Positions 41,224 through 58,561 of a DNA stretch of 64,000 nt are shown in pieces. Origin of the DNA: Klebsormidium nitens (Eukaryota > Plantae > Klebsormidiophyceae); NCBI GenBank assembly GCA_000708835.1, contig DF237422.1, positions 1 through 64,000 of the forward strand, written 5' to 3'. Each line of letters opens with the position of its first letter. Positions within the stretch are counted from its first letter, which is position 1. The translations under genes were made by a program, and so were the position numbers. Under the pieces are notes generated by a model. That model made no database searches, was not told the origin of the DNA, and saw only the letters and a program-made list of their open reading frames with translations.

Positions 41224-44200
41224 TTAGTAGCAGTGCTCACTGTACACCTTGTCTACATTCTGGCCCCACTCGTTGTGGTACTTGTCGAGGAGCTTGTCGG
41301 CAGGGCACATGCCTGCATACGGCAAAGGTGGCCACATAAAGCGATGCTCAGGAGATTGAACTCTCAGGTGGAGCAAAGCAAGCGCAGTAAACAGAAGACT
41401 TTTGAGCTGACGCCGTGCAGCCAGGCGACTATCGGTACAGCGAGCGAAACAAGGGGAACAAAGTCTTCTGTGCAATATTCCGAGGCCGACAACAACTCGG
41501 GCCGCCATTAGGCAGGACAGCAGGACTGCGGTTGTATTGACTCCCATGTTTACGACGCCGTTCGAACTTCAAACTCTGCCGTGACTCCAGAAACATGGGT
41601 TACTTTGAGCAGAAAAAGGGATATGATGCAGGCGACCCGCCGATGACACGTGTACCCAGGCTGTTCGCTTTTGCAGAAGAAGGAGAACGCCGACCAAAGG
41701 AGAAAGCTGTACACGGATGTTCAGAAGTGATAGATACCAACGAAGCGTCACCTTACCTGTGCGCGCAATGTCTTCCAGCATCTCAACGTACTTCTCTTCC
41801 TTCAGACCCCGCCTCTCAAGGCCCTCCTGCGAGGAGCGAGGCTATAGTCAGTTACTTGTGTTGTTAAGACTGTCGTTTTCCAAAACGGCCTTCTGTTACG
41901 GTATACTTCCAAGGAAGTGACGGAAGCTTAAATCTGCACCACTTGACTACCACCGGAAGAACAAGTACAAAAATGAGAAAAACACAGAAAAGACTGGCTT
42001 CACAATAGCAAGCGACTGGTTCCTGCGCAACTGGCTGGGCAATCGCTCCTCGGAACGGCGTCAGACGGCGTCCATTCCGCTGCACTCCAAAACAAGCTGA
42101 AACCTTCGAGACGGAACGAGAAACTGAATTTGCAAGTGACAGAAATGAGACAAGAAATTCGATTTTTTTAAGGCAACCTGCGATATTATGCGCAATCCTT
42201 TTGACCGGTCGTGTCTCGAATCGGCGTTGAATAACGTTCCGATCCGCTGCACTTCAAGTCAAACTGAAGCTCTGAGAATGAAATCGAGAACTGAATGTGC
42301 ATGGGCGGAATGTAAGAAGGGCGGATCGGCTTACTTTAGCGAGCTGCACGACTTGATTTGAAAACCTCAAAACTTAGCCGGGACAAGATTTTGCAAGGAC
42401 GAAACGAGACAAGGGCGGATTCGGCTTACTTTGGCGAAGTGCACGACTTTTTGGGCAACCTTTGGACTGTCCGGTCGTTTCTTCAAGGGGCGTAAAAAAG
42501 TCGTTCCATTCTGCTGCCCTTTAAGACAGACAGAAACCTCCAAGACGAAACCAAACAAATAGAAATCACCAAAGACAAACCCACGACGAGGAGAGACTGT
42601 CTTACTTTGGCGAGCTGCACGACCTTTTGCGCAACGTCTTGAACGGTCGTGCCTCGAAACACCGTCTTCAACCCGGTCCTTGGCACGTTGTTGCGCAGCG
42701 CATCGCGCTCCTCTGCGGTCCAATCCTTGATGAGCTGGAGCGCGGCCTGGAGCGACTTGTCATCATAGAGGAGACCAACCTGGTGCCGCAGAGGAAAAGG
42801 TTTAGGAAGGAGCAACTTAGCAGCTAAGAAAAGGGCGCTCCTCTGCGGTCCACGCTGCAGTAAGCTGGAGCGTGGCCTTGATGGACTTGTCGTCGTAGAG
42901 GAGACCAACCTGGTGCCGAAGAGGAAAGAGTTTCAGGAGGGAACAACTTAGCGGCTGATAAAGCGTTCCTCTCCGGTCCAAGCTGCAATAAGCTGGAGCG
43001 TGGCCTTGATGGACTTGTCGTCGTAGACGCGACCAACCTGATGCCGAAGAGGACAACGTTTCAAGAGGGAGCGACTTAGCGGCTGATAAAGCGTTCCTCT
43101 GCGGTCCAAATTGCGATGAGCTGGAGCGCGGCCTGGAGGCACTTGACTTCGCAGGAGAAACCGACCTGGTGCCAAGAAGGAGAAGGCGTGAATTGATGGC
43201 ATCCATTTTCTGTTTGGCATAAGCAGCTGAGGTGTGATTTTGAACGCCTTTATGCACCCAACAAAAGGGCGCTCCTCTGCGGTTTACGTAGCTATGAGCT
43301 GGAGCGCGGCCTGGAGCGATGCCAAACGTGGCATCGTAGAGGAGATCAAGCTGTTTCGGAAGAAGGAAACATTTGGGATGGTGGCTGTCACATTCACCAG
43401 CTACCAAAAGGGGCAGTCCTTTGCGGTGCAGTCGGGAACAAGCTGTACCGCGGACTGGAGAGACTTGTCGGCATAGGGAATTCCACTCTGATGCCAAAAA
43501 TATAACGGGAGGCTTAAACAACCAGATGCCCGGGAGGAGTGGCAAAGCTTGCGAAGGCCCTGAATTGCTATTGTTTTGCGGTGCGTTCTCCTCATCGAGC
43601 TCGGTAACAGACTAGAGCGACTTGCTGTCGTGAAAATGACCTAGTGCCGAGGAGAAGTCAAGAAATAGTTCGAAGCGCAACATGCCAGATACGACAACAG
43701 TGGCTGACAGGAGAAGAAACTTCAGAACGAATGGCGTTTTCACGTGCCCGCCGACAAAGACAATCAAGTCGAGGGGAGGGGTATTGATCACGACGACAAA
43801 GTCCAAACGTGTGAAGATCAAACACCAGTTTAGAAGACTCTGAAGAAGTCGGCTATGAACAGCAATCGTCATCAACCGACTCCCGATTGTGTTGGGGGAA
43901 GGAACTACTGCACCAAGACGAATGCCTGTAGCCGGAAATGGCGTATCAAGTTTGCAGGACTACGGCTGCAGGCGAATAATCGCTTGGATGAATGAAGGAC
44001 GGAGAAAGCACGGGTCTTTCGATGTGCTCACCCAGAGAGCGGACTGCGCAGTGATGTGCTCGGGCGGGCCGTTGTCCGAGCCCCGCATCTCGACGATGTT
44101 CTTTAGCCGCACCTGCGTTGACAAACAAAAGGGATGAGCCGAATTTTCAAAGCTAGAACGGGGTCAGGAATCTCGCTCATGAAGACGCCATGAAAGTGTC

Positions 44201-47200
44201 TCTTACTTCAAACCCTGATTCTGGCGAACCCAGTTCCTTAGAGCTCCAATCTGTCGCAGCTCACCAGAAACACTTCCCTACGTAAAGATGTACAAAATGG
44301 AAGAGGAGCGGTTCAGGACGCGCCTGTCGTGATCTTAACGATCCTATAAAATCTGCACAGACTGCCAGATGTATTCTAATGACGTGCGTTGCAATATCGT
44401 GTCCTGTCTTTGTCGATTGCCTTCTGATGGATCCATTCGCTCTGACAAAGTACACAAGACAACGATCGTCATCGAAGATGCTATCATCTGAGTGACTAGC
44501 CTCACCTCCGACAGTATGCTGTTGAGCTGGTTCAACCAGTCCGCCATAGTTGGGTACTTTCCAGGGAGGGGCTCGAGCTTGCCAGCCATGAAGTCCTGGA
44601 AACAATGCACCGTGGTTGAGGGTTGGAGGAGAAAGCAAATGGGTACAATATCTGAGCTGCTACCGTCGTTTTGCAATTGACACCGGCTAAAAGTTTTGCA
44701 CTTGACATCGGCTGAACGAACTGTACTTACGACTCCTCCTTCTGTTCCGTTGAGCGGACAGGAGTGTGGATCTTCCACTGTTTACCAAGTAATTGAGATC
44801 GTTAGCAAGGATACTGCGCGTCTCAGCGCAGTGCCATCGAACCCTCGAGCTAGATCCCACAGCCCGCTGCCTGTTGGGTGAGCACCGAATGCAAAAAACC
44901 CTCAAACTCTACGAATGCACAGAACCCTCCATGAAAAGATGCAGCACAAAGCGTCAGTTTCTGAGCCTTGACACATTGAAACTTACCTTGAAATCCAGTC
45001 CCAGGGCCTTGACGTACTCCTTCCCATTCTGGACGTAGTACATGGGCACGTCGAGCGCCCAGTCTACAAATTTCTCAAACCTGTAACGAACAAGGTTGCC
45101 GCATTAGGGCATCAACTTACAAACATGGCCACAATTGTCGTAACGTTGATTGTTATTGCGGAGTTCGTCCGAGCTGATACCGTTTCTTATTCTACCATCG
45201 TAATTCTAAGACAGTCAGTCTGGCCCAATGGCAATTTGGGCGATCGCATGGTGTATGTGGGCAGGGGGCGGTTTCCTTCGTTAGTAAAAAGCGAAGCTAC
45301 ACAGCGTGTCCGCAACTTAGTCCGTCGCGGCGCTCATCTTTTCCAACCAATGCATGGATTCAAGCCAATCAATCGTAGACGGCCTAGCTTTGCGAATCCC
45401 AGGGATAGCCCCCCGTTCGCAATGGAAAAACATGCCGCTATCACCACTGGAAAATTTTCGAATGAAACCGAAGCGAAGTATTGTAAAGGCAAACGTTCTC
45501 AAAACGCACCCAAAGTCGTCGTCGAACACGAACGGCAGCATTCCGGTGCGGTCCGGGTCGGTGTCGGTCCACGTGATGCTGCGGTAGCTCACGAACCCGC
45601 TGGGCTTCCCTTCGTAAAACGGCGAGTTGGCGAAAAGCGCTGTGGCAATCTGGGGGCAGAAAACTCGAGAATTCAAAAACCCCGCTACCCGAACCACGCT
45701 TCTTTGTTTTGGCCGCAAGCCTGGTGGCTCGGAAAAACTACCACCCGCCGCCGCGACAGTCAATCTGCATTCTCCACCTTGCCGACTACGCTGTCAGCGA
45801 GACTTTGATCAACCGCAGCCTCCATCGCTAAGTAGGTCCAACAGGAATGGTGTACCAAGAGAATAACAAGTTACGTTCGCGTTCAAAGAAACTCACCGGT
45901 TGCAGCGCCAGACCGACGCGCATCTTGTTCACCATGTCCTGCTCCGACTCATAATCGAGGTTCACCTGCACAAAAACGACGATAAAATCATTCTGAAGTT
46001 GCGGGATCTCATAGGTGTTTCTATCCGCAACGCAGCCGTTTATCCAGGACCCAGCTGTCTTCTGACGGGTGCCGAGACATTCAGATGCCGCGCACAACAC
46101 ACCACCTTTTTGCTGTCAGACCAAAGTTGACAACGAGCCCTGGTTCGTACCTGGACCGTGCACGTGCGATACATGACGTCATGTCCGTGCTCCCCCTTCT
46201 GTGAGATGAGGTCACTGGCCAGGATGTGCCGCTCCTTGGGAATAGTCGGAGATGACGTCCACTTCGGATCGAAGCCTAGGGTCAAGAAACCTGCGCCGAG
46301 CTCCTTGCAGACTGCCTTAACCTGGAAATGAACCCGGATATGATGTTGATCTGAATGACCCGAGTTGAAACCGAGTTTGAAGACCGAAACTCATTTTGGG
46401 CCAAAGCCAAGGGTCAAAAAACCTGCGGCGAGCTTCTTGCAGACTGCCTTTACCTGGATATGAAGCTGGATATGAAGCCGAATATGACGCCACTTCAGAT
46501 GGGCTGAAAGAAACAGAGTAAAAACATCTCCAGATTGACTTGAGCGGACCCGAATATTTTTAGACTAACCCGAGGTTTCTAGCTAATCCCCTAAGCTCTT
46601 CCACCCGAAAACCTAAACGTTTATCCTGCAACATAATCACGATCACGGTGGAGTAGATAAGCCGGCTTCAACTTCAACTAATACAGGTTTGGTGAGGCAG
46701 GTTGCCCGGCTCTTCACGAATCGCTTCGACCTGAAAAGTTCTGTAATCGAGTACATTGACTCCTAGCCATTGACGCAAGGTTTCGAACCACTGGCGGAGT
46801 GCTCCCCCGCTGTATCACATTCTATACTGTTCTCATGAGCACCCCAGAAGGGCGGCGTCGAACGAGCTGCTGAAATCCCACGTTTGCCGAGGGGGCATCT
46901 GAAAATCAAGCAATGCATATTACACCCACATACTGGAACGCTCCCAACCTGGAACGACACTGCTGACAACACGTCCAGATGGGAGTGTCCGCCTGTCACC
47001 TTCGTTCCAGATTGTTGACTGATCTTCAATGAAAACATTCGACATTCTTTCTGCATCTTGTGGAGCCTGCTGGAAAGTGATCAATGCTCGCGATTGGCCC
47101 CCGAAGCCCTGACAGTCCCGACTTCTCATGCAAACCATACGTGTGCATCTTGCTTACTTCAGCGCACTCCTCTTCGCTTCATACAATTGGGCCGAGCTTG

Positions 47201-49394
47201 CTGAGATCATAAGGACGCGATGTGAGCAGACTCCGTACCCAGTACCTCATTTGAGCACTGTGAAAAAGAGGAACATGATTGGAGTATGAAGAAGAGGTTA
47301 GTTGAACCGACCTGACTGATGTGGTTGTTAACCTCCTCAAGCGTCTCATGCAACGTCTTGAACGGCGCACCACTCAACTCGAGCTGGCCCCCAGGTTCCA
47401 ACGTGATGCTGGCACCGTTCTGGAAATGAAATTCTGTCAGCATATGGTGCAGTTTACAGTCAAAAACCAAATGAGGACAAGGATTCGGATCAAGCTCAAG
47501 ATGAGGAATGAGATCGATTCTCTGCAGCAACGGTCCGTAGTATCTGCATTCTTGATGACAAACTTGTGGCCCGATGAGAAAATAGTACTGTGTTGATGCA
47601 GCTTGTGTGCCAGCAGCTCTTACCGCCAGCATTCCAGCTTGATGCGTGCATGGATTCCAAAGCAATCCTTGGTTGCGACGCTAACATGCTTCAAAAAATA
47701 TCATGTGCCAGAATGTCGACTTTACTAAATGTTGACCAGTACAGTCTTAAGAGGCCTGCCGCTGCCAAAAGTAGCGATTGCTTTCTGCGGCTCGGAGGAT
47801 CAGGGGGTGATATGACAGACTCAACGCAGATTTACAGATCTGTTGAAAACATCTCCAGAATCGTGTCTGGAAAAGTCTGATCTGAAGGACGATTAGAAGA
47901 CGAAATTTCCACGGAGAAAGCTAGGGATTCCGAAAGCCGTTCACATGAACGGTTGCGTCGCCAATTGTGAAAGTATGCTATGCGAAAGAGATCTCTTATG
48001 ATTGAATTTAAGCTTTTTTCCAGGGGAGATTCGAGCGTAAGTGAGTTGAACCAGCTTAGCAGAAGACTCGTTCAATCCTGATTGTAGGCAGTAGAATCTT
48101 CCGATGACATACCCCAACAGAACAATATGCCAATCTTTTCAATCAATCTGAGCAAGCTTACTTAGGTAATTCCTGTCAAATGCATTCCAAGATGTTTTGA
48201 AGGTCACCTGCTTGAGCGCGAGCAGGTTGCCATGTTCAAACGACCGCTCCCACCCAAACTTATCCGCTAGCTTTCCCAGAATGGTGCGGATCTCCTCGTA
48301 GGTCAGACGCTTCTTGTCGCTGACCCGGAAACCAATCTTCTCATGCTCGGTCCCAATCCTGTAGACATTTCAAAACATCCGATAAGTTTGAAAATTCCTG
48401 CTCCTTGACATTAGCTCTGACAGATGCCTCTTGTCACAGCCCGGAAGTTTTCTTCTTCTCATCCTCAGGTTCAGTGGCAAGGTGGACAGACGCAGTGTTA
48501 CAGATGCAAGGCTCTTTCATTCAAATATTGCAATATATCTCCCAATTCAATCTGGCATTGAGCAAAGAGTGCCTCTGCTGTAGGTTTTTTCGCGGAAAGT
48601 GGACCTCCTGGTCGCTTTGACTGAGCCTGTGGTTGACCCGACAGCCCGGTCTACTTATGAAAGCCATAACAACTCTTGTTAAGAGATTCCAATTGTGGCT
48701 CATTGGTTTTGATGAAGAAGCTGAGTTGTAGCCACATAGTTTGTGGTCCATTCTTTGTTGAATACATTGTGACTTAACAGTAGCTTTCATATACCCACCC
48801 ATTTGTAACGACCACCTTAGAAACAACATGGTGAATGGCAAACCCAATGCTTCAGAGCTTATTCTTGGCTGAATGAGCTAGCAAAGTGCAAAGAACACTT
48901 GAGCTAGAACCACATACAAAAGAAAGGCGCTGTGAATCCATTCTCTTATGGACACTAACACACTTACAGAAGTCTTATTCAACCATGGCGGCATGTGATA
49001 CGTCATGCATGCAAAGGAATAGCATCTACAAGCAGATGCAACCTGCATCCTCTACCAGGAATTCTCATGAAACAGGCGCCAATGTGTACATCGGCTTATC
49101 ACACATGCAAAAAAGTAAGTTCCCAGAGCATGAGAGCAAAATCCTAGTTGCACTTCACATACCACCACATTGCATCACAACATCAAAGATAGGACTGGAT
49201 CAACAATTGAAATTCTGATGAATTACCAAGGTGGTCTCTATATCCTCTCACACAGCCGGATTGAAGCATCAGACTCACCGCCACTGGTCCCTTGGAGTGC
49301 ACGCCTTTTTGAAGAAGTCAACAAGATCTTGCTTCGTCAACCTGGCTTCCTCTCCATTTTCCCCCTTGGAGCCGCTCGCTTTCTGATCAGCCAT
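41224..49394 (-). CDS. Divergent plant-type glutamate-cysteine ligase paralog (GCS2 family), 450 aa, no transit peptide
   Basis: 12 exons: 49394-49279, 48358-48208, 47419-47312, 46321-46151, 45965-45897, 45649-45510, 45080-44987, 44595-44506, 44112-44032, 42779-42606, 41826-41757, 41312-41224; 1353 nt, GT-AG, no internal stop. Motifs [62 protein letters not shown]. Confidence 0.93.
42780..43500 (-). repeat. About 5-6 serial decaying copies of the acceptor plus 5' end of exon 42779-42606
   Basis: agctggagcg.ggcc...gacttgtc.tc.tag...gaccaacctg.tgccg recurs at roughly 125-nt spacing upstream of the real exon. Confidence 0.9.
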
Positions 49395-50455
49395 CTTTCT
49401 TGACAAGTCGAATGATACCTTTTGTCCCTACCTGTCCGACTGACCTTCCCCCTGAAATTCCCAGCTTCGCGAAGATCACGCTGCTCTGTTCCTCCAAACA
49501 AGAACGTCTGTGTGGGAAAAATGGCAGTGGCAATTGTTGCCTTCCTTTTCGAAGCTGGGAGGGATTCTCTCTGCTGCGTCCATAGGGGATCACTACCGTT
49601 CGATAGCACGCCATGCACGCCAAGAAGGCCACGTTTGGCGCCAGCGCTGTTCTGCTGCACCGCCATGTTCCAACTTCCACCACTTGTCGCTTCCACTGCA
49701 ATTGGCGCAATTGCGGGGCATAAGCTATGCCCTGGAAAGTCAAAAGTTTGGCTCCTCTAGTTACAAGCCTGCTGAAGTTACTACGGTAGTACTACCGTGG
49801 TATGTACCAGCCGACCAGGTACCGGTATTCATTGTGCAGAGTCGGACCTTTCAATCATTGAGCTCTTCAGGCCACTGTAATTGCGTCAGAATGACGACAA
49901 CGTTGAACGCAGAATTCGCTCTGTCTTATCTTCAAGTTCTGTTCTTAACCGCAACTTCTCCCGCAGCCAAGTTTCTGGCGCTTCTGAGATTTGTAGAGTA
50001 GGTATCGAAGGTAGTACTAGAAGGGAGGTCCTTTAAACTTTTAATATCCGCTGTAACCATGTAGCGGGTTAGGTCTTACCTACGTTAGCAATCCAATCCA
50101 AATCGGGTTACGAAAACAACATGGAATGATCCTGAATCTTAACACAGCATTTCTAGCGCTATCATCATGTACGGTTCCTCCGTATTTTGGTGTTCAAAGC
50201 GCTTTCCTGGTCCTGCTGGACTGCAGCAGCGCTGCCCCGTCACTCATCCCTGGCGAGTCCGCGCAATCTGGATTGGCTCTTTTGCGCTGCTCTGAACATT
50301 TTGTGGCGGCTTCAAGTTGGTCCTGTTGACAATCTCTGAGCGAAGTGCAACCTGCCACATTCATCGCTTCCATGCAGATCTTCATGCAGCTCGTCTTGCG
50401 CACGGAGGGCGTCGTTGGCCAGACTTAGGGGTAAGGACGGATCGGCATTTGCTCG
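49395..50455. promoter_or_regulatory. Putative bidirectional promoter/5'UTR interval between the two GCL genes
   Basis: 1061 nt between divergent start codons at 49394 (-) and 50456 (+). No specific cis-elements identified. Confidence 0.5.
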
Positions 50456-53400
50456 ATGGCGGACGGGGCGACCATGAGGGCAGCCTGCGGGCACGCTCTT
50501 CCTCACCACGCGCCTCTTGGTCAGCGGCAGGGATCCAGGCAGGAAGCATCCGTTTCTTCTAGGCTTGTGAATGTGGGCCCAGGACGAGTCCACAGGCATG
50601 CTTCAAATGCACGCGCCGGCCCACAGATCTTGCCTCGGATACGACAAAATTGTCTTGCTTCTGCACCGGTTGGTTGTAGAAAGAAAAGCTTAGAGCATGC
50701 AGTTCACGGGAGGCATCGGCTAGAGGGATCGGTATCGAGGTTGAGCGGAGGGTCTGACTTGAAGTCAGAATCGACGATGCACAGAAGAGGGAAAGGGACG
50801 ATTGTTGCCGCAGGACCGCCGACTGAGGAGGTTGTCACGGATACGAAGATGCTGACAAAGGCTGACCTTGTTGAGTACATGAAGAAAGGATGCAAACCGA
50901 AGGAGAATTGGCGGTAAGAACCGCTGCAGTTTATTGTCAGATTCAATCCACAAGATTGACAAGATTGATAGATTGTTATCCTGGTCTTAAGGACCGACTT
51001 GAATCTATCTCAAATGTGGCTTCAGCTTTTCGATGGTGGTACATCTGTTCGCTAACCCTAATCTGCCATTCTGTGCTTATGTTTTGAAGATGCATCAACG
51101 GTGCATGTCATGGCGATTTCTGGATATGTGATTGGTCCGAGATTCAAAAGGCCGCCAGCCTTTCGGCATTGGTGGATGAGGCCCAAACATCAACACTATT
51201 GGCCTCTTTGAGAATTTTCTAAGCATGACACTACGGTTTGTATTCTTGCCTGGCTTGTTGGAAGCACATTCTGATGTCCTGGGCGGAGCTAAGAGAGCAA
51301 AGGGCTGCAGATTGCTCACGATCAACAGCGTCCAAGCGCTGTCACCTTCCCGCTTCGAACTTGACATCTGATACGATCCACCTTCAAGTTCCAGCAATTT
51401 GTGTGACAACTTGATTACCACAAGCTGAAAAGCTGGCCTCTGAGTTTTATCTCTGCTTGTTTTGAAAGAAAGTCTGTTGAAAGAAAGAGAGGATGGATTC
51501 TCTACAGCACAGATTCGAATCAAGCTGACGGTTTCCGTTTCTTTTTGTAACCTGCATGAAACAATTGCATATTTAGTTGATGTTTTCTGAGTCCGTTTAT
51601 AACCTGCACAAAATGCTTGAACTTTTTACTCTTATCCCTCCCTGCATTTCAGAGCAGATGTGTAACACAGAGGTCATGAAAAGTAAGGTCAGAAAACTCA
51701 CTCTAATCATATCAAGTTAAGATTTGTCAGGGTCTGACTGTACAGCACCTGCTCTGCAGCATAGGGACTGAACACGAAAAGTTTGGGTTCAAGTTTGAGG
51801 ACAAGCGGCGGCTAAACTACGAGGAGATCCATCAGCTGCTTGAGGCGCTGGCTGACCGGTTTGGATGGGAGCGGGTGTTTGAGAACAACAAGTTGATTGC
51901 ACTTAAGCAGGTAAAACAAGAAGCAGTCCCCTTCCATATGATCTGGAATTTGCAGTTCATGGATGAAAGCAATCGTGCTTTCTGAGGGCGTTCGGCGATT
52001 GGTTTTACACTACTCATCATTGGCTTTTCGGAAAGTGGTATAAGGTACATAATGATGCTAATGAAGACAATTGTTGCTTGTCCATCCATACAAACGCTGC
52101 GAGCTGATGCATATTCAAATATACTGTAGTGACAATCAAAGACTTTGGAGTTAGCAGCTGACAGATGTGATCAAGTGGACGAGCCTTTTCCCCCCGAGGA
52201 ATACTAGCAAGTGCTTTGAACCTTGAGACACGCTTCATGCTCAAGCAGGGGTGCTAGGCTCGAGCTAGATGACCTGCCTCCTTCACTACTTCCTTTATTA
52301 CAAGTAGCTGATTAGTAATTTGCTTCGTCCTGCAGAGCGGCCAAAGCATCACGCTAGAGCCAGGGGGTCAGTTTGAGCTGAGCGGGGCCCCCTTGAGCAC
52401 TCTGCACCAGACATGTGGAGAGGTCAACAGCCACCTGTATCAAGTGAGGCTGCTGAGCAGCCTTTGTTGCCACTGTCCCTCATTTGACATTGCCATCTGG
52501 TGGGAGAAATCCTGCTATCTGCAGTTGCCACCTATGATTAAACCACCACCCCGGGTATAACTCGGGGCAAACCGGCTGGCATTCGCTCCAGCGGCCACCG
52601 AAATTCAAATTTCGGCCCGAAGGCGCCCGCTTCCAGCTTGTGCATTTTTGACCTTATACATCAAAGAAACTAAAGCATTACTTCACCGTTTTAGGCGGTC
52701 TTGCTTTCTAGAGCTCTATCTTAGTGGTATCAGCAAGGCCAGGTCGAAACCGCCGCTTAATTCGTGAAGGAACGGCCTGTTTTAATGTAGGCAAGGGTAC
52801 CTTCTTTATGTGTGCGTCCAGTGTGCGCCCGTCGCGAATTCAAGTTGCGAACTTGATTATGAGCATTCCTGGTTACCAGGAGTATTTATACCTTGGGTGG
52901 TGGTTTAATCGTGGAGGATTGGTCAAGGGGGTTTGTGAACTGAAATACCTGTCGTTGTGTCCAAGGGCTAGGAGATGCTGAGTCTCCTTATGGAAAGGAC
53001 GATATAAAAGTTTGCAGTCATTCGAGACAGGATCAGGAACTCCCTAGGTCTGACAGAAAGGCTGCCAGAACAGCAGATTCGCAATAGTGAAGGCTGTGTT
53101 CAAGAGTCCACTTCAGAACGACTTCCTGTGTTCAGCATGGTCTGGTATTTGGATGCCGGCAACCCCTCACTGATAAAAATAAGGAAAAGAAGGCAGAGGA
53201 CATTCACCTCACTGATTGGTACCTGACCATAGAAGCTGAGAACAAGCACGTATGCAATGAAATGCTCTGTAACGAGCAACAAAGGAGTGCGCCCTATCAT
53301 AGATCAGGTCCACAAGAGACTGGTGCCACGTAGTGTGCCACCGTAGTGTGCGACAATGACAGTACTTTCAAATAGTGAGTTTGCAGTGCCGCTGTGACAG

Positions 53401-56400: not shown

Positions 56401-58561
56401 TCTCGCCGCAGGTACGCCTGAAGAAATATATCGAGATGCGCGGCGCGGATGCGGGCCCGTGGAAGTCGTTGTGCGCGCTGCCCGCGTTGTGGGTATGTCC
56501 CCGCAAACCCTAAACCCCGGACCGCTCTGCTCACGCACCGTCTTTTTCCTCGTCCGAATGCTGCAGGTGCGACTGAAACGGTACATTGAAATGCGGGGGG
56601 CGGATAATGGGTGTGTAGACCTGATTCTGGGGCAGTCGGCCATGTGGGTGAGTCGAGAAGGAGGCGGTTAGAAGGGCCTCCGTACCGCTGTCACTCCCAT
56701 CTTCCGAGTCGGTTTTAGAAAGGCCTGCATCATGTTTCATGGAAGCAGACTTTCCTTACATCATCGGTGTGTGAGAGCTGGATGTTACGAGGATTTATAC
56801 ATCGGGTCTGGAACTCTCGAGCTGTTGCTAGAGGGCTCAACTTGAAACACACCACCTTGTGGGGCAAGGATAACGCTCAACCGAGTGCATTCCACATCTG
56901 GTTTCTCAGATTTGTGCTGCAAAGAAGGTTGCTGAAGGGAATCCGCTGTTTCATAATCTGTCGGGCCAGTCGTTTCGCCCAATATTGTTTCCATCCTTTT
57001 ATTACAAGAAGTCCTCCTTAAATCGTGTCATGAAGGCCTTTCTGCTTGATAAGCTCCCCCCTTTCCTTTCCCGCACCCCTCTGTATTGGAAGAAAGTCTC
57101 GGGCTCCTTCTGGAAACAGGGGTGTCCCAATCACGGTCACCCAGTCCTTGCTGCAAGCGACTACCAAAGTGATTCCCCTGACTCTCAGTCGCCCAAAAGG
57201 CGGTGGATCGGAGGACGCCATCTACTGTAGCCCCTCCCGATTGCTTTGCCCCACTCTCTGCGCAGAACACGTCACCTTAGCATACTCTAGAGCGGCAACC
57301 ATGATAATTGCCGTCCCGACCACATTGGAATGTTCAGCTGGAACGCAACCGTTGCCTAGTGATGAACCGTTTAATGAAAGGTGTAGAGTAGATTTTCAAT
57401 CCGCACTGCCTCTGTCCCATCGCAGCTGGGGCGGTCGGACCTTTGTTTTGACAAGGAGTCGCTCTCAAGGGTGCCTGGACCCGAACCCCGACTGTTTGAA
57501 CCCTCTATTCAAAACCGTAGTCGTCCACAAGCAGGATCAACCTCAGTGTACCAAAATCCTTTTCTCCTTTCCCCCGTCACAGGTCGGGCTTTTGTACGAC
57601 GAGGAGTCGCTACAAGGCTGCCTGGACCTGATCTCCGACTGGACGACTGGCGAGATGCAAATGCTGCGCGACAAGGTCCCGGTCACCGGCCTGCGCACGC
57701 CCTTCCGCGACGGCATGGTCCGCCACGTGGCACAGGATGTTCTCAAGCTTGCGAGGGTGAGCGTTCGAGGACCCTCCTTTTGCATACCGTACAGAACATG
57801 ACATCGTAACAGCACAGAGGGGGGATCATCAAGTGCATGTACACGCAACTCTTTTTGACAGCACGGCCACTGTCCTGAAGCTCGCGCGGGTGAGCTCCCA
57901 AAAAACGCGTTTTGATTCGGAGCGGCTTGAAAGCTGCAAGCTTCGAGAGGTGCACTTCCTGAGTACCGTGCATTATTGCGCGCCCTCTGGAGAAGTCAGT
58001 TTGCTCAAAGTCCTTTCCAAGTCGCATTGGTTAGCGTACAAAGACTTCCAATCTGAAAAGCCTGTTACTGCCCAGCGTACGCATTTGTGTGGTTTATGCT
58101 AAATGGCTTAGTGCTTTGATTCGTTCCCGTTGTCTGGGTTTGCCATTTGTGCATTGTTGGAACAGGACTTGGAGGTCACGCTTATAGGAGCATTTACGTG
58201 CATACTAGAACCGTTGCTGACAGTCTGTTTGCTTGCTTTCCACAGGAGGGCCTGGAGCGACGCGGCTTCAACGAGGCTGAGTTCCTGAAGGGTCTGGAGG
58301 ACATCGCACGAAAAGGTGAGGCATTTGCGCGGGACAAGTTCGAAGTAGGAACAGATATGCAGACTCCGACGGCGCTGAAATATCAACGGACACGTACTCA
58401 GACAAGTGGGTTCTAATAGTAAAAGGTGTGCATATCTCACGCCCTCTGAACAAGTGCCTTCTTCTTCTGCAGGAGTGACGTCCGCTGATGTCCTGCTTGA
58501 CAAATATCACAACGAGTGGGACGAGGACGTAGACCGAGTCTACGACGAGTTTCTCTACTGA
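50456..58561 (+). CDS. GSH1: Glutamate-cysteine ligase (gamma-glutamylcysteine synthetase), plant GSH1 type, with ~115-aa transit-peptide-like extension; 566 aa using exon 8a
   Basis: Exons 50456-50913, 51760-51910, 52336-52443, 53441-53686, 54241-54380, 54886-54979, 55528-55617, 56412-56492 (8a), 57583-57756, 58246-58315, 58473-58561. Motifs [88 protein letters not shown]. Confidence 0.96.
56567..56647 (+). CDS. Second copy of GSH1 exon 8 (8b), candidate mutually exclusive exon: [27 protein letters not shown]
   Basis: ctgcag| 81 nt |gtgagt; same length and phase as exon 8a, no stop, catalytic EMRGAD intact, 8 synonymous versus 1 nonsynonymous difference over the first 13 codons. Confidence 0.8.

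Follow-up and report, generated by a model that had tools for sequence, protein, structure and literature searches.

Introduction

Glutamate-cysteine ligase (GCL) of plants, the product of GSH1, is described as exclusively plastidic (PMC6463388, PMC3388825) and for Arabidopsis, Indian mustard and legumes a location in plastids alone has been reported (PMC3388825). In the Arabidopsis enzyme, AtGCL, residues 1-73 form the transit peptide and a regulatory disulfide between Cys186 and Cys406 serves as the activating switch of the plastid form (PMC6463388). A different solution is known for another enzyme of the glutathione pathway, Arabidopsis GSHS (GSH2), which reaches two compartments by means of two transcript populations (PMC3388825, citing Wachter 2005). 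No case of a cytosolic GCL or GSH1 in plants was found in the literature searched. One paper refers to a diatom GCL as cytosolic in passages that do not give the supporting evidence. Klebsormidium and glutamate-cysteine ligase were found together only in one phytochelatin review, and no published description of the gene analysed here was found.

The window, a stretch of 64,000 nucleotides from Klebsormidium nitens (contig DF237422.1, positions 1 to 64,000), contains two plant-type GCL genes that lie head to head and are divergently transcribed. The plus-strand gene is a canonical copy with a basic presequence. The minus-strand paralog belongs to the same family as the plastidic plant enzymes (GSH1; AtGCL, Brassica juncea GCL, PDB 2gwc/2gwd/6gmo) and has their core motifs, but differs from plastidic GSH1: it has no transit peptide, it has no regulatory cysteine pair, the loops encoded by its exon 4 are rewritten and its branch is approximately five times longer. 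A sequence-only reading of this DNA had predicted a cytosolic enzyme and pointed to the plastid restriction of the Arabidopsis protein, a point with which the literature cited above agrees.

Structure of the minus-strand GCL gene

The minus-strand gene extends from ATG 49394 to a TAA stop codon at 41226-41224 and comprises 12 exons, with all junctions GT-AG and in frame (Table 1). Minus-strand matches to translated pieces of the plus gene occurred in the same order along the gene, an in-frame GT-AG solution existed at each junction, and the family alignment was reproduced by the joined exons. The exon-intron layout is identical to that of the neighbouring canonical copy. Exon 1 codes for 18 new residues followed by 20 conserved residues and terminates at a GTGAGT donor at 49278 (GT at 49278-49277, phase 2), in agreement with the start codon and exon end that had been proposed from the sequence.

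The encoded protein is a member of TIGR01436 / Pfam GCS2 (PF04107). In profile searches that were carried out exon by exon, 10 of the 12 exons tiled TIGR01436 positions 24-446 in order, exon 11 and the conserved part of exon 1 (20 residues) being below scorable length. The core motifs IGTEHEK and LEPGGQ.ELSGAP are kept, and exon 4 aligns to residues 123-181 of 2gwc with a two-residue deletion and rewritten loops. A tandem array with a period of 128 nt (3.7 copies, 82% identity) occupies 42705-43185, in intron 9 and the start of exon 10. This array duplicates the acceptor and the first ~78 nt of exon 10, and only its last copy continues in frame. Pfam analysis of ten long open reading frames elsewhere returned no matches, and scanning the window for Rfam families and tRNAs gave none either.

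Table 1. Features of the divergent GCL gene pair. Coordinates are window positions.
Feature	Position	Strand	Basis or remarks
Exon 1 coding part, minus GCL	49279..49394	-	start ATG 49394-49392, context AGAAAGATGG
Exon 2 (IGTEHEK...)	48208..48358	-	sequence model, RNA
Exon 3 (HETLEEV; family: HQTC)	47312..47419	-	sequence model, RNA
Exon 4 (rewritten loop)	46151..46321	-	sequence model, RNA
Exons 5-12 and stop	41224..45965	-	family alignment and GT-AG junctions
Exons 5-8, minus GCL	45965-45897, 45649-45510, 45080-44987, 44595-44506	-	
Exons 9-12, minus GCL	44112-44032, 42779-42606, 41826-41757, 41312-41227	-	
5' leader, unspliced, ~272-285 nt	49395..49678	-	RNA contigs
In-frame TAG kept in mRNA	49428..49430	-	sequence and RNA contigs
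Upstream ORF 1: 109 codons from AUG 49666 (strong context), not in the GCL frame	49337..49666	-	overlaps main AUG
Upstream ORF 2: AUG 49614, 75 codons	49387..49614	-	stop TGA 49389-49387 overlaps main ATG
Upstream ORF 3: AUG 49583, 35 codons	49476..49583	-	
Gap between 5' ends of divergent transcripts, ~535 nt	49679..50212	.	zero contig depth 49678 to 50213
Exon 1 coding part, canonical plus copy	50456..50912	+	117-residue basic presequence, then AAGPPTEE...LTKADL

Transcription of the gene pair

Public RNA data were used to determine whether the minus gene is expressed. Across 22 runs, between 1/4 and 1/3 of the sampled words of 47200-52000 were present, as would be expected if the runs contained nothing but exons of this region. 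For four runs from four studies, assembled contigs were mapped on 46100-52000, and in each of the four a single contig joined 46149-46319, 47310-47419, 48208-48357 and the sequence from 49278 onward. The resulting joints (48357 to 49278, 47419 to 48208 and 46319 to 47310) are all GT-AG on the minus strand; as the skipped parts end in CT..AC on the strand shown, the contigs derive from spliced RNA. Lack of transcription, one of two outcomes that the sequence-only reading had named as contrary to its prediction, is thus not observed: all four runs show RNA of the gene with correct splicing.

Coverage of the plus transcript starts between 50213 and 50277, and a joint links the end of its exon 1 at 50912 with 51759. 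The spacer of approximately 535 nt that separates the two transcripts is probably a shared bidirectional promoter region. The plus-gene leader (~240 nt) carries an 18-codon upstream ORF of its own at 50372-50428, with AUGs at 50372 and 50384.

An unspliced leader with an in-frame stop codon

The second contrary outcome was an upstream exon encoding a transit peptide that is spliced in frame. No such exon was found. The exon 1 piece of the contigs runs without a joint to 49665, 49673, 49674 or 49678 in the four runs, and the spliced contigs of these runs contain neither joints nor loose ends within the leader or past it. The leader therefore continues unbroken through the in-frame TAG, which means that the main mRNA includes this stop codon and has no upstream coding exon spliced on. 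The TAG is 36 nt upstream of ATG 49394, as previously noted, and the 11 sense codons between them include no ATG. These statements concern assembled contigs, in which rare isoforms are lost and neither the exact 5' end nor the strand is fixed.

One element of the sequence-only reading did not survive. It had held that none of the AGs in this interval is preceded by a polypyrimidine tract, but pyrimidines make up 56-62% of the sequence ahead of AGs 49400/49399 and 49396/49395, comparable to the 56-69% measured at the RNA-proven acceptors of the same gene. Because this share equals that of proven acceptors and the AG nearest to ATG 49394 shares its phase (phase 0), an acceptor is not excludable here by sequence alone; the question is settled by the RNA contigs, which pass through these positions and exclude it. 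A minor or condition-specific isoform might supply a presequence and make the gene dual-targeted or plastidic, either by an alternative start site, by an upstream exon spliced to AG 49396/49395, or by removal of 49444-49395, which would bring 74 codons of upstream ORF 1 into frame. The phase and the acceptor-like pyrimidine content of AG 49396/49395 are compatible with this idea, as are the phase 0 position of the donor GT 49444 within upstream ORF 1, the loss of rare variants from contigs and the precedent of Arabidopsis GSHS with its two transcript populations (PMC3388825). However, upstream ORF 1 enters the GCL frame only if the 50-nt GT..AG stretch is removed, and all four contigs keep these 50 nt with no joint or loose end. 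In addition, the proven introns measure 788-990 nt, which makes a 50-nt intron atypical, and the upstream ORF 1 peptide has no family match, contains several acidic residues and is unlike the plus presequence. Overall, we regard a presequence-supplying isoform as very unlikely and an mRNA that encodes the GCL frame from ATG 49394 as the main product of the gene.

The 285-nt leader contains three upstream AUGs, so the main AUG, flanked by A(-3) and G(+4), comes fourth along the transcript. Since upstream ORF 1 has a strong-context AUG and overlaps the main AUG, protein output may be low, and the upstream AUGs may limit translation of the minus GCL such that its output is low or conditional. AUG 49666 is within ~12 nt of the observed 5' contig ends and may therefore often be skipped. 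No Pfam match was obtained for the upstream ORFs, and their GC3 is uninformative, with values of ~0.5 in all frames and a similar 0.52 in the real plus presequence. A decayed transit peptide within the leader was also considered, but comparison of 49395-49760 (three frames and DNA) with the plus presequence gave scores within the shuffled range (best z ~2.3). A search for inverted repeats returned short chance pairs only.

The predicted minus-strand protein begins near the start of the mature domain

The alignment of plus exon 1 with solved plant GCLs sets in at RRG..TIVAAxPPTEE, and AASPPTEE is the first stretch of the Brassica crystal construct, which indicates that the minus protein begins about where the mature plastid enzyme begins. 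The earlier proposal that the gene starts directly at the mature domain is borne out by a conserved 21-residue stretch that aligns with the plus-copy stretch located 15 residues after AAGPPTEE. The distance to the conserved LTKxDL helix is 18 residues in the minus protein versus 15 in the mature plus protein. These 18 residues include four Asp or Glu and carry a net charge of -1, whereas the plus-copy presequence spans 117 residues with 5% Asp or Glu and a net charge of +13. The minus paralog thus has no plastid transit peptide of the GSH1 type, its leader being unspliced and interrupted by an in-frame stop. Alpha-proteobacterial plant-type GCLs likewise have no presequence, with 11-13 residues before the LTK-equivalent helix. 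The plus copy also features an internal in-frame AUG at 50777, from which a protein without most of the presequence would be made.

Together, the unspliced leader, the in-frame TAG and an acidic N-terminus unlike the plus presequence support a cytosolic enzyme as a prediction. Import into plastids without a cleavable presequence exists for a few plastid proteins, and an internal or non-canonical signal could in principle direct the minus protein into plastids or mitochondria. We consider such a route highly improbable: the N-terminus is acidic, the C-terminus (..SEHCY) does not read as PTS1-like, a PTS2 pattern is absent by the same reading, and the missing plastid-type redox pair suits a protein that resides outside the stroma.

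Loss of the regulatory cysteine pair

Both cysteines of the regulatory pair (Cys186-Cys406 in AtGCL) are missing from the minus paralog. At the position of the first, exon 3 encodes HETLEEV where the plus copy has HQTCGEV, and the second is gone from exon 9, which corresponds to SLCALPALW in the plus copy. The pair is present in 148 of the 153 scorable eukaryote-like GCLs that were fetched, and its loss fits an enzyme that works outside plastid redox control.

A second, independent loss among eukaryotes was observed in GCLs of a group around Helicosporidium, a green alga that does not photosynthesise (P0022, P0239 and P0247), where both redox cysteines are gone. The plus gene itself contains two adjacent versions of the exon for the second redox cysteine, at 56412-56492 and 56567-56647, ~75 nt apart; one encodes SLCALPALW, while the other has no cysteine and resembles minus exon 9.

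Several alpha-proteobacterial plant-type GCLs are also without the cysteine pair, like the minus paralog. Minus exon 9 (44032-44112) is nearer to the alpha-proteobacterium-like sequence P0084 (GPPERIVAQSALM) than any plant sequence is, and the two have the motif GPPE.I.AQSAL in common. This likeness reflects either convergence or chance. A bacterial origin of the minus paralog, which the motif might suggest, is ruled out by the tree and the shared introns: with eukaryotic introns and a sister position to the alga's canonical copy, the bacterial resemblance is secondary and does not reflect descent or transfer.

Origin and divergence of the minus paralog

To place the two window copies, a tree was constructed in which their exon translations, with X at the junctions, were combined with 34 named GCLs of land plants, chlorophytes and alpha-proteobacteria. 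The minus and plus copies group as sisters (99/98), nested in a streptophyte clade (100/99), and intron positions are common to both, so the minus paralog descends from a streptophyte GSH1 gene. Its end branch is 0.82 compared with 0.15 for the plus copy, an approximately five times faster rate of evolution. Over 428 aligned codons, the copies have 64% amino-acid identity and a dN of 0.27-0.28, dS is saturated, and identity at four-fold sites is 27%. These values place omega at no more than ~0.13. The duplication that produced the minus copy from the plus copy is old and took place within the alga's own lineage; there was no recent gene conversion, and the minus copy is under purifying selection. 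Because neutral sites are saturated, truncation at duplication and later decay of the presequence are not distinguishable.

Six of the 78 family-invariant columns are changed in the minus copy (G31A, L124I, M154I, M162A, Y260F and H311Q) compared with one in the plus copy, and 22 of 142 near-invariant columns are changed compared with two. On the basis of these substitutions, the minus paralog may no longer make gamma-glutamylcysteine.

The minus copy might instead be a decaying or regulatory duplicate, transcribed only because the promoter of its neighbour is bidirectional, and yield little or no protein. The leader is consistent with such a fate, having one strong upstream AUG whose frame overlaps the main start among its three, as are a branch ~5x that of its sister, the changes at family-invariant residues and the lack of any ortholog among the sequences searched. 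Against this, ~470 codons over 12 exons remain open and the splice sites canonical despite saturated synonymous sites, a dN of 0.27 and the low omega are accompanied by a GC3 of 0.77 (0.76 in the functional plus copy), 72 of the 78 invariant columns are kept, including those of the IGTEHEK and LEPGGQ.ELSGAP motifs, and four independent studies each yielded an assembly of the mRNA. We therefore judge this outcome unlikely and continue to favour a gene that is translated into a GCL-family protein.

No ortholog of the minus paralog was recovered when exon 4 was searched against 1.84 billion representatives, where the best match had 53% identity and matches had the canonical loop length only. Word searches returned land plants, chlorophytes and alpha-proteobacteria, and no ortholog. 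Two sets of sequences were considered as orthologs and rejected. Algal ORFs with short N-termini include several that look like 5'-truncated transcript calls, and the seven that were checked all retain both cysteines and resemble the plus copy more than the minus paralog. The Helicosporidium-like group has lost the pair, yet is only 46-50% identical to the minus paralog.

A parallel in mode of evolution is provided by GCL paralogs of the fern genus Adiantum, which are likewise lineage-specific and fast-evolving, with an exon-4-type loop rewritten and the first cysteine lost. Unlike the minus copy, they have a long N-terminal extension (at least 81 residues) and keep the second cysteine, and their origin is independent. 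These paralogs, from A. capillus-veneris and A. nelumboides (P0080 and P0191), have a branch of 0.54 and the rewritten loop MPQNKIKVMRNCFDISGETGYNVM.

Discussion

We consider it probable that this locus harbours an expressed, old GCL duplicate without a presequence beside a plastid-type copy, with a product that is cytosolic by default. According to this model, the minus copy goes back to an old duplication, lies head to head with its parent and has kept no more of exon 1 than the mature part, with the ~535-nt spacer serving both genes as a putative bidirectional promoter. Its main mRNA starts near 49678 and carries the 285-nt unspliced leader, and GCL-frame protein would come only from AUG 49394, presumably after the three upstream AUGs are bypassed by leaky scanning. 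The protein, having no presequence, would stay in the cytosol, no longer subject to the disulfide switch by which the plastid form is activated, and would be expected to retain gamma-glutamyl ligase chemistry. A more specific proposal, that the paralog is a cytosolic gamma-glutamyl ligase outside plastid redox control whose rewritten loops let it use an acceptor other than or besides cysteine, is put forward tentatively and is on balance doubtful. On this proposal the streptophyte alga would possess an additional gamma-glutamyl pathway outside the plastid, driven by the bidirectional promoter that it shares with the canonical enzyme.

The arrangement resembles that of Arabidopsis GSH2, where a glutathione-pathway enzyme is put in the cytosol by omission of a presequence, a location that is predicted here. 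It differs in that GSH2 is one gene with two mRNAs, whereas the K. nitens paralog is a separate, diverged gene and encodes the first enzyme of the pathway.

The rule in the literature is that GCL resides in plastids and that gamma-glutamylcysteine is exported to the cytosol. If the model is correct, a natural gene that is expressed and under selection, in an alga placed as sister to land plants, would show that the compartment and the redox control of GCL can be shed together. The minus-strand gene would also offer a test case for why the first step of glutathione biosynthesis stays in plastids, and is a candidate for a new ligase specificity.
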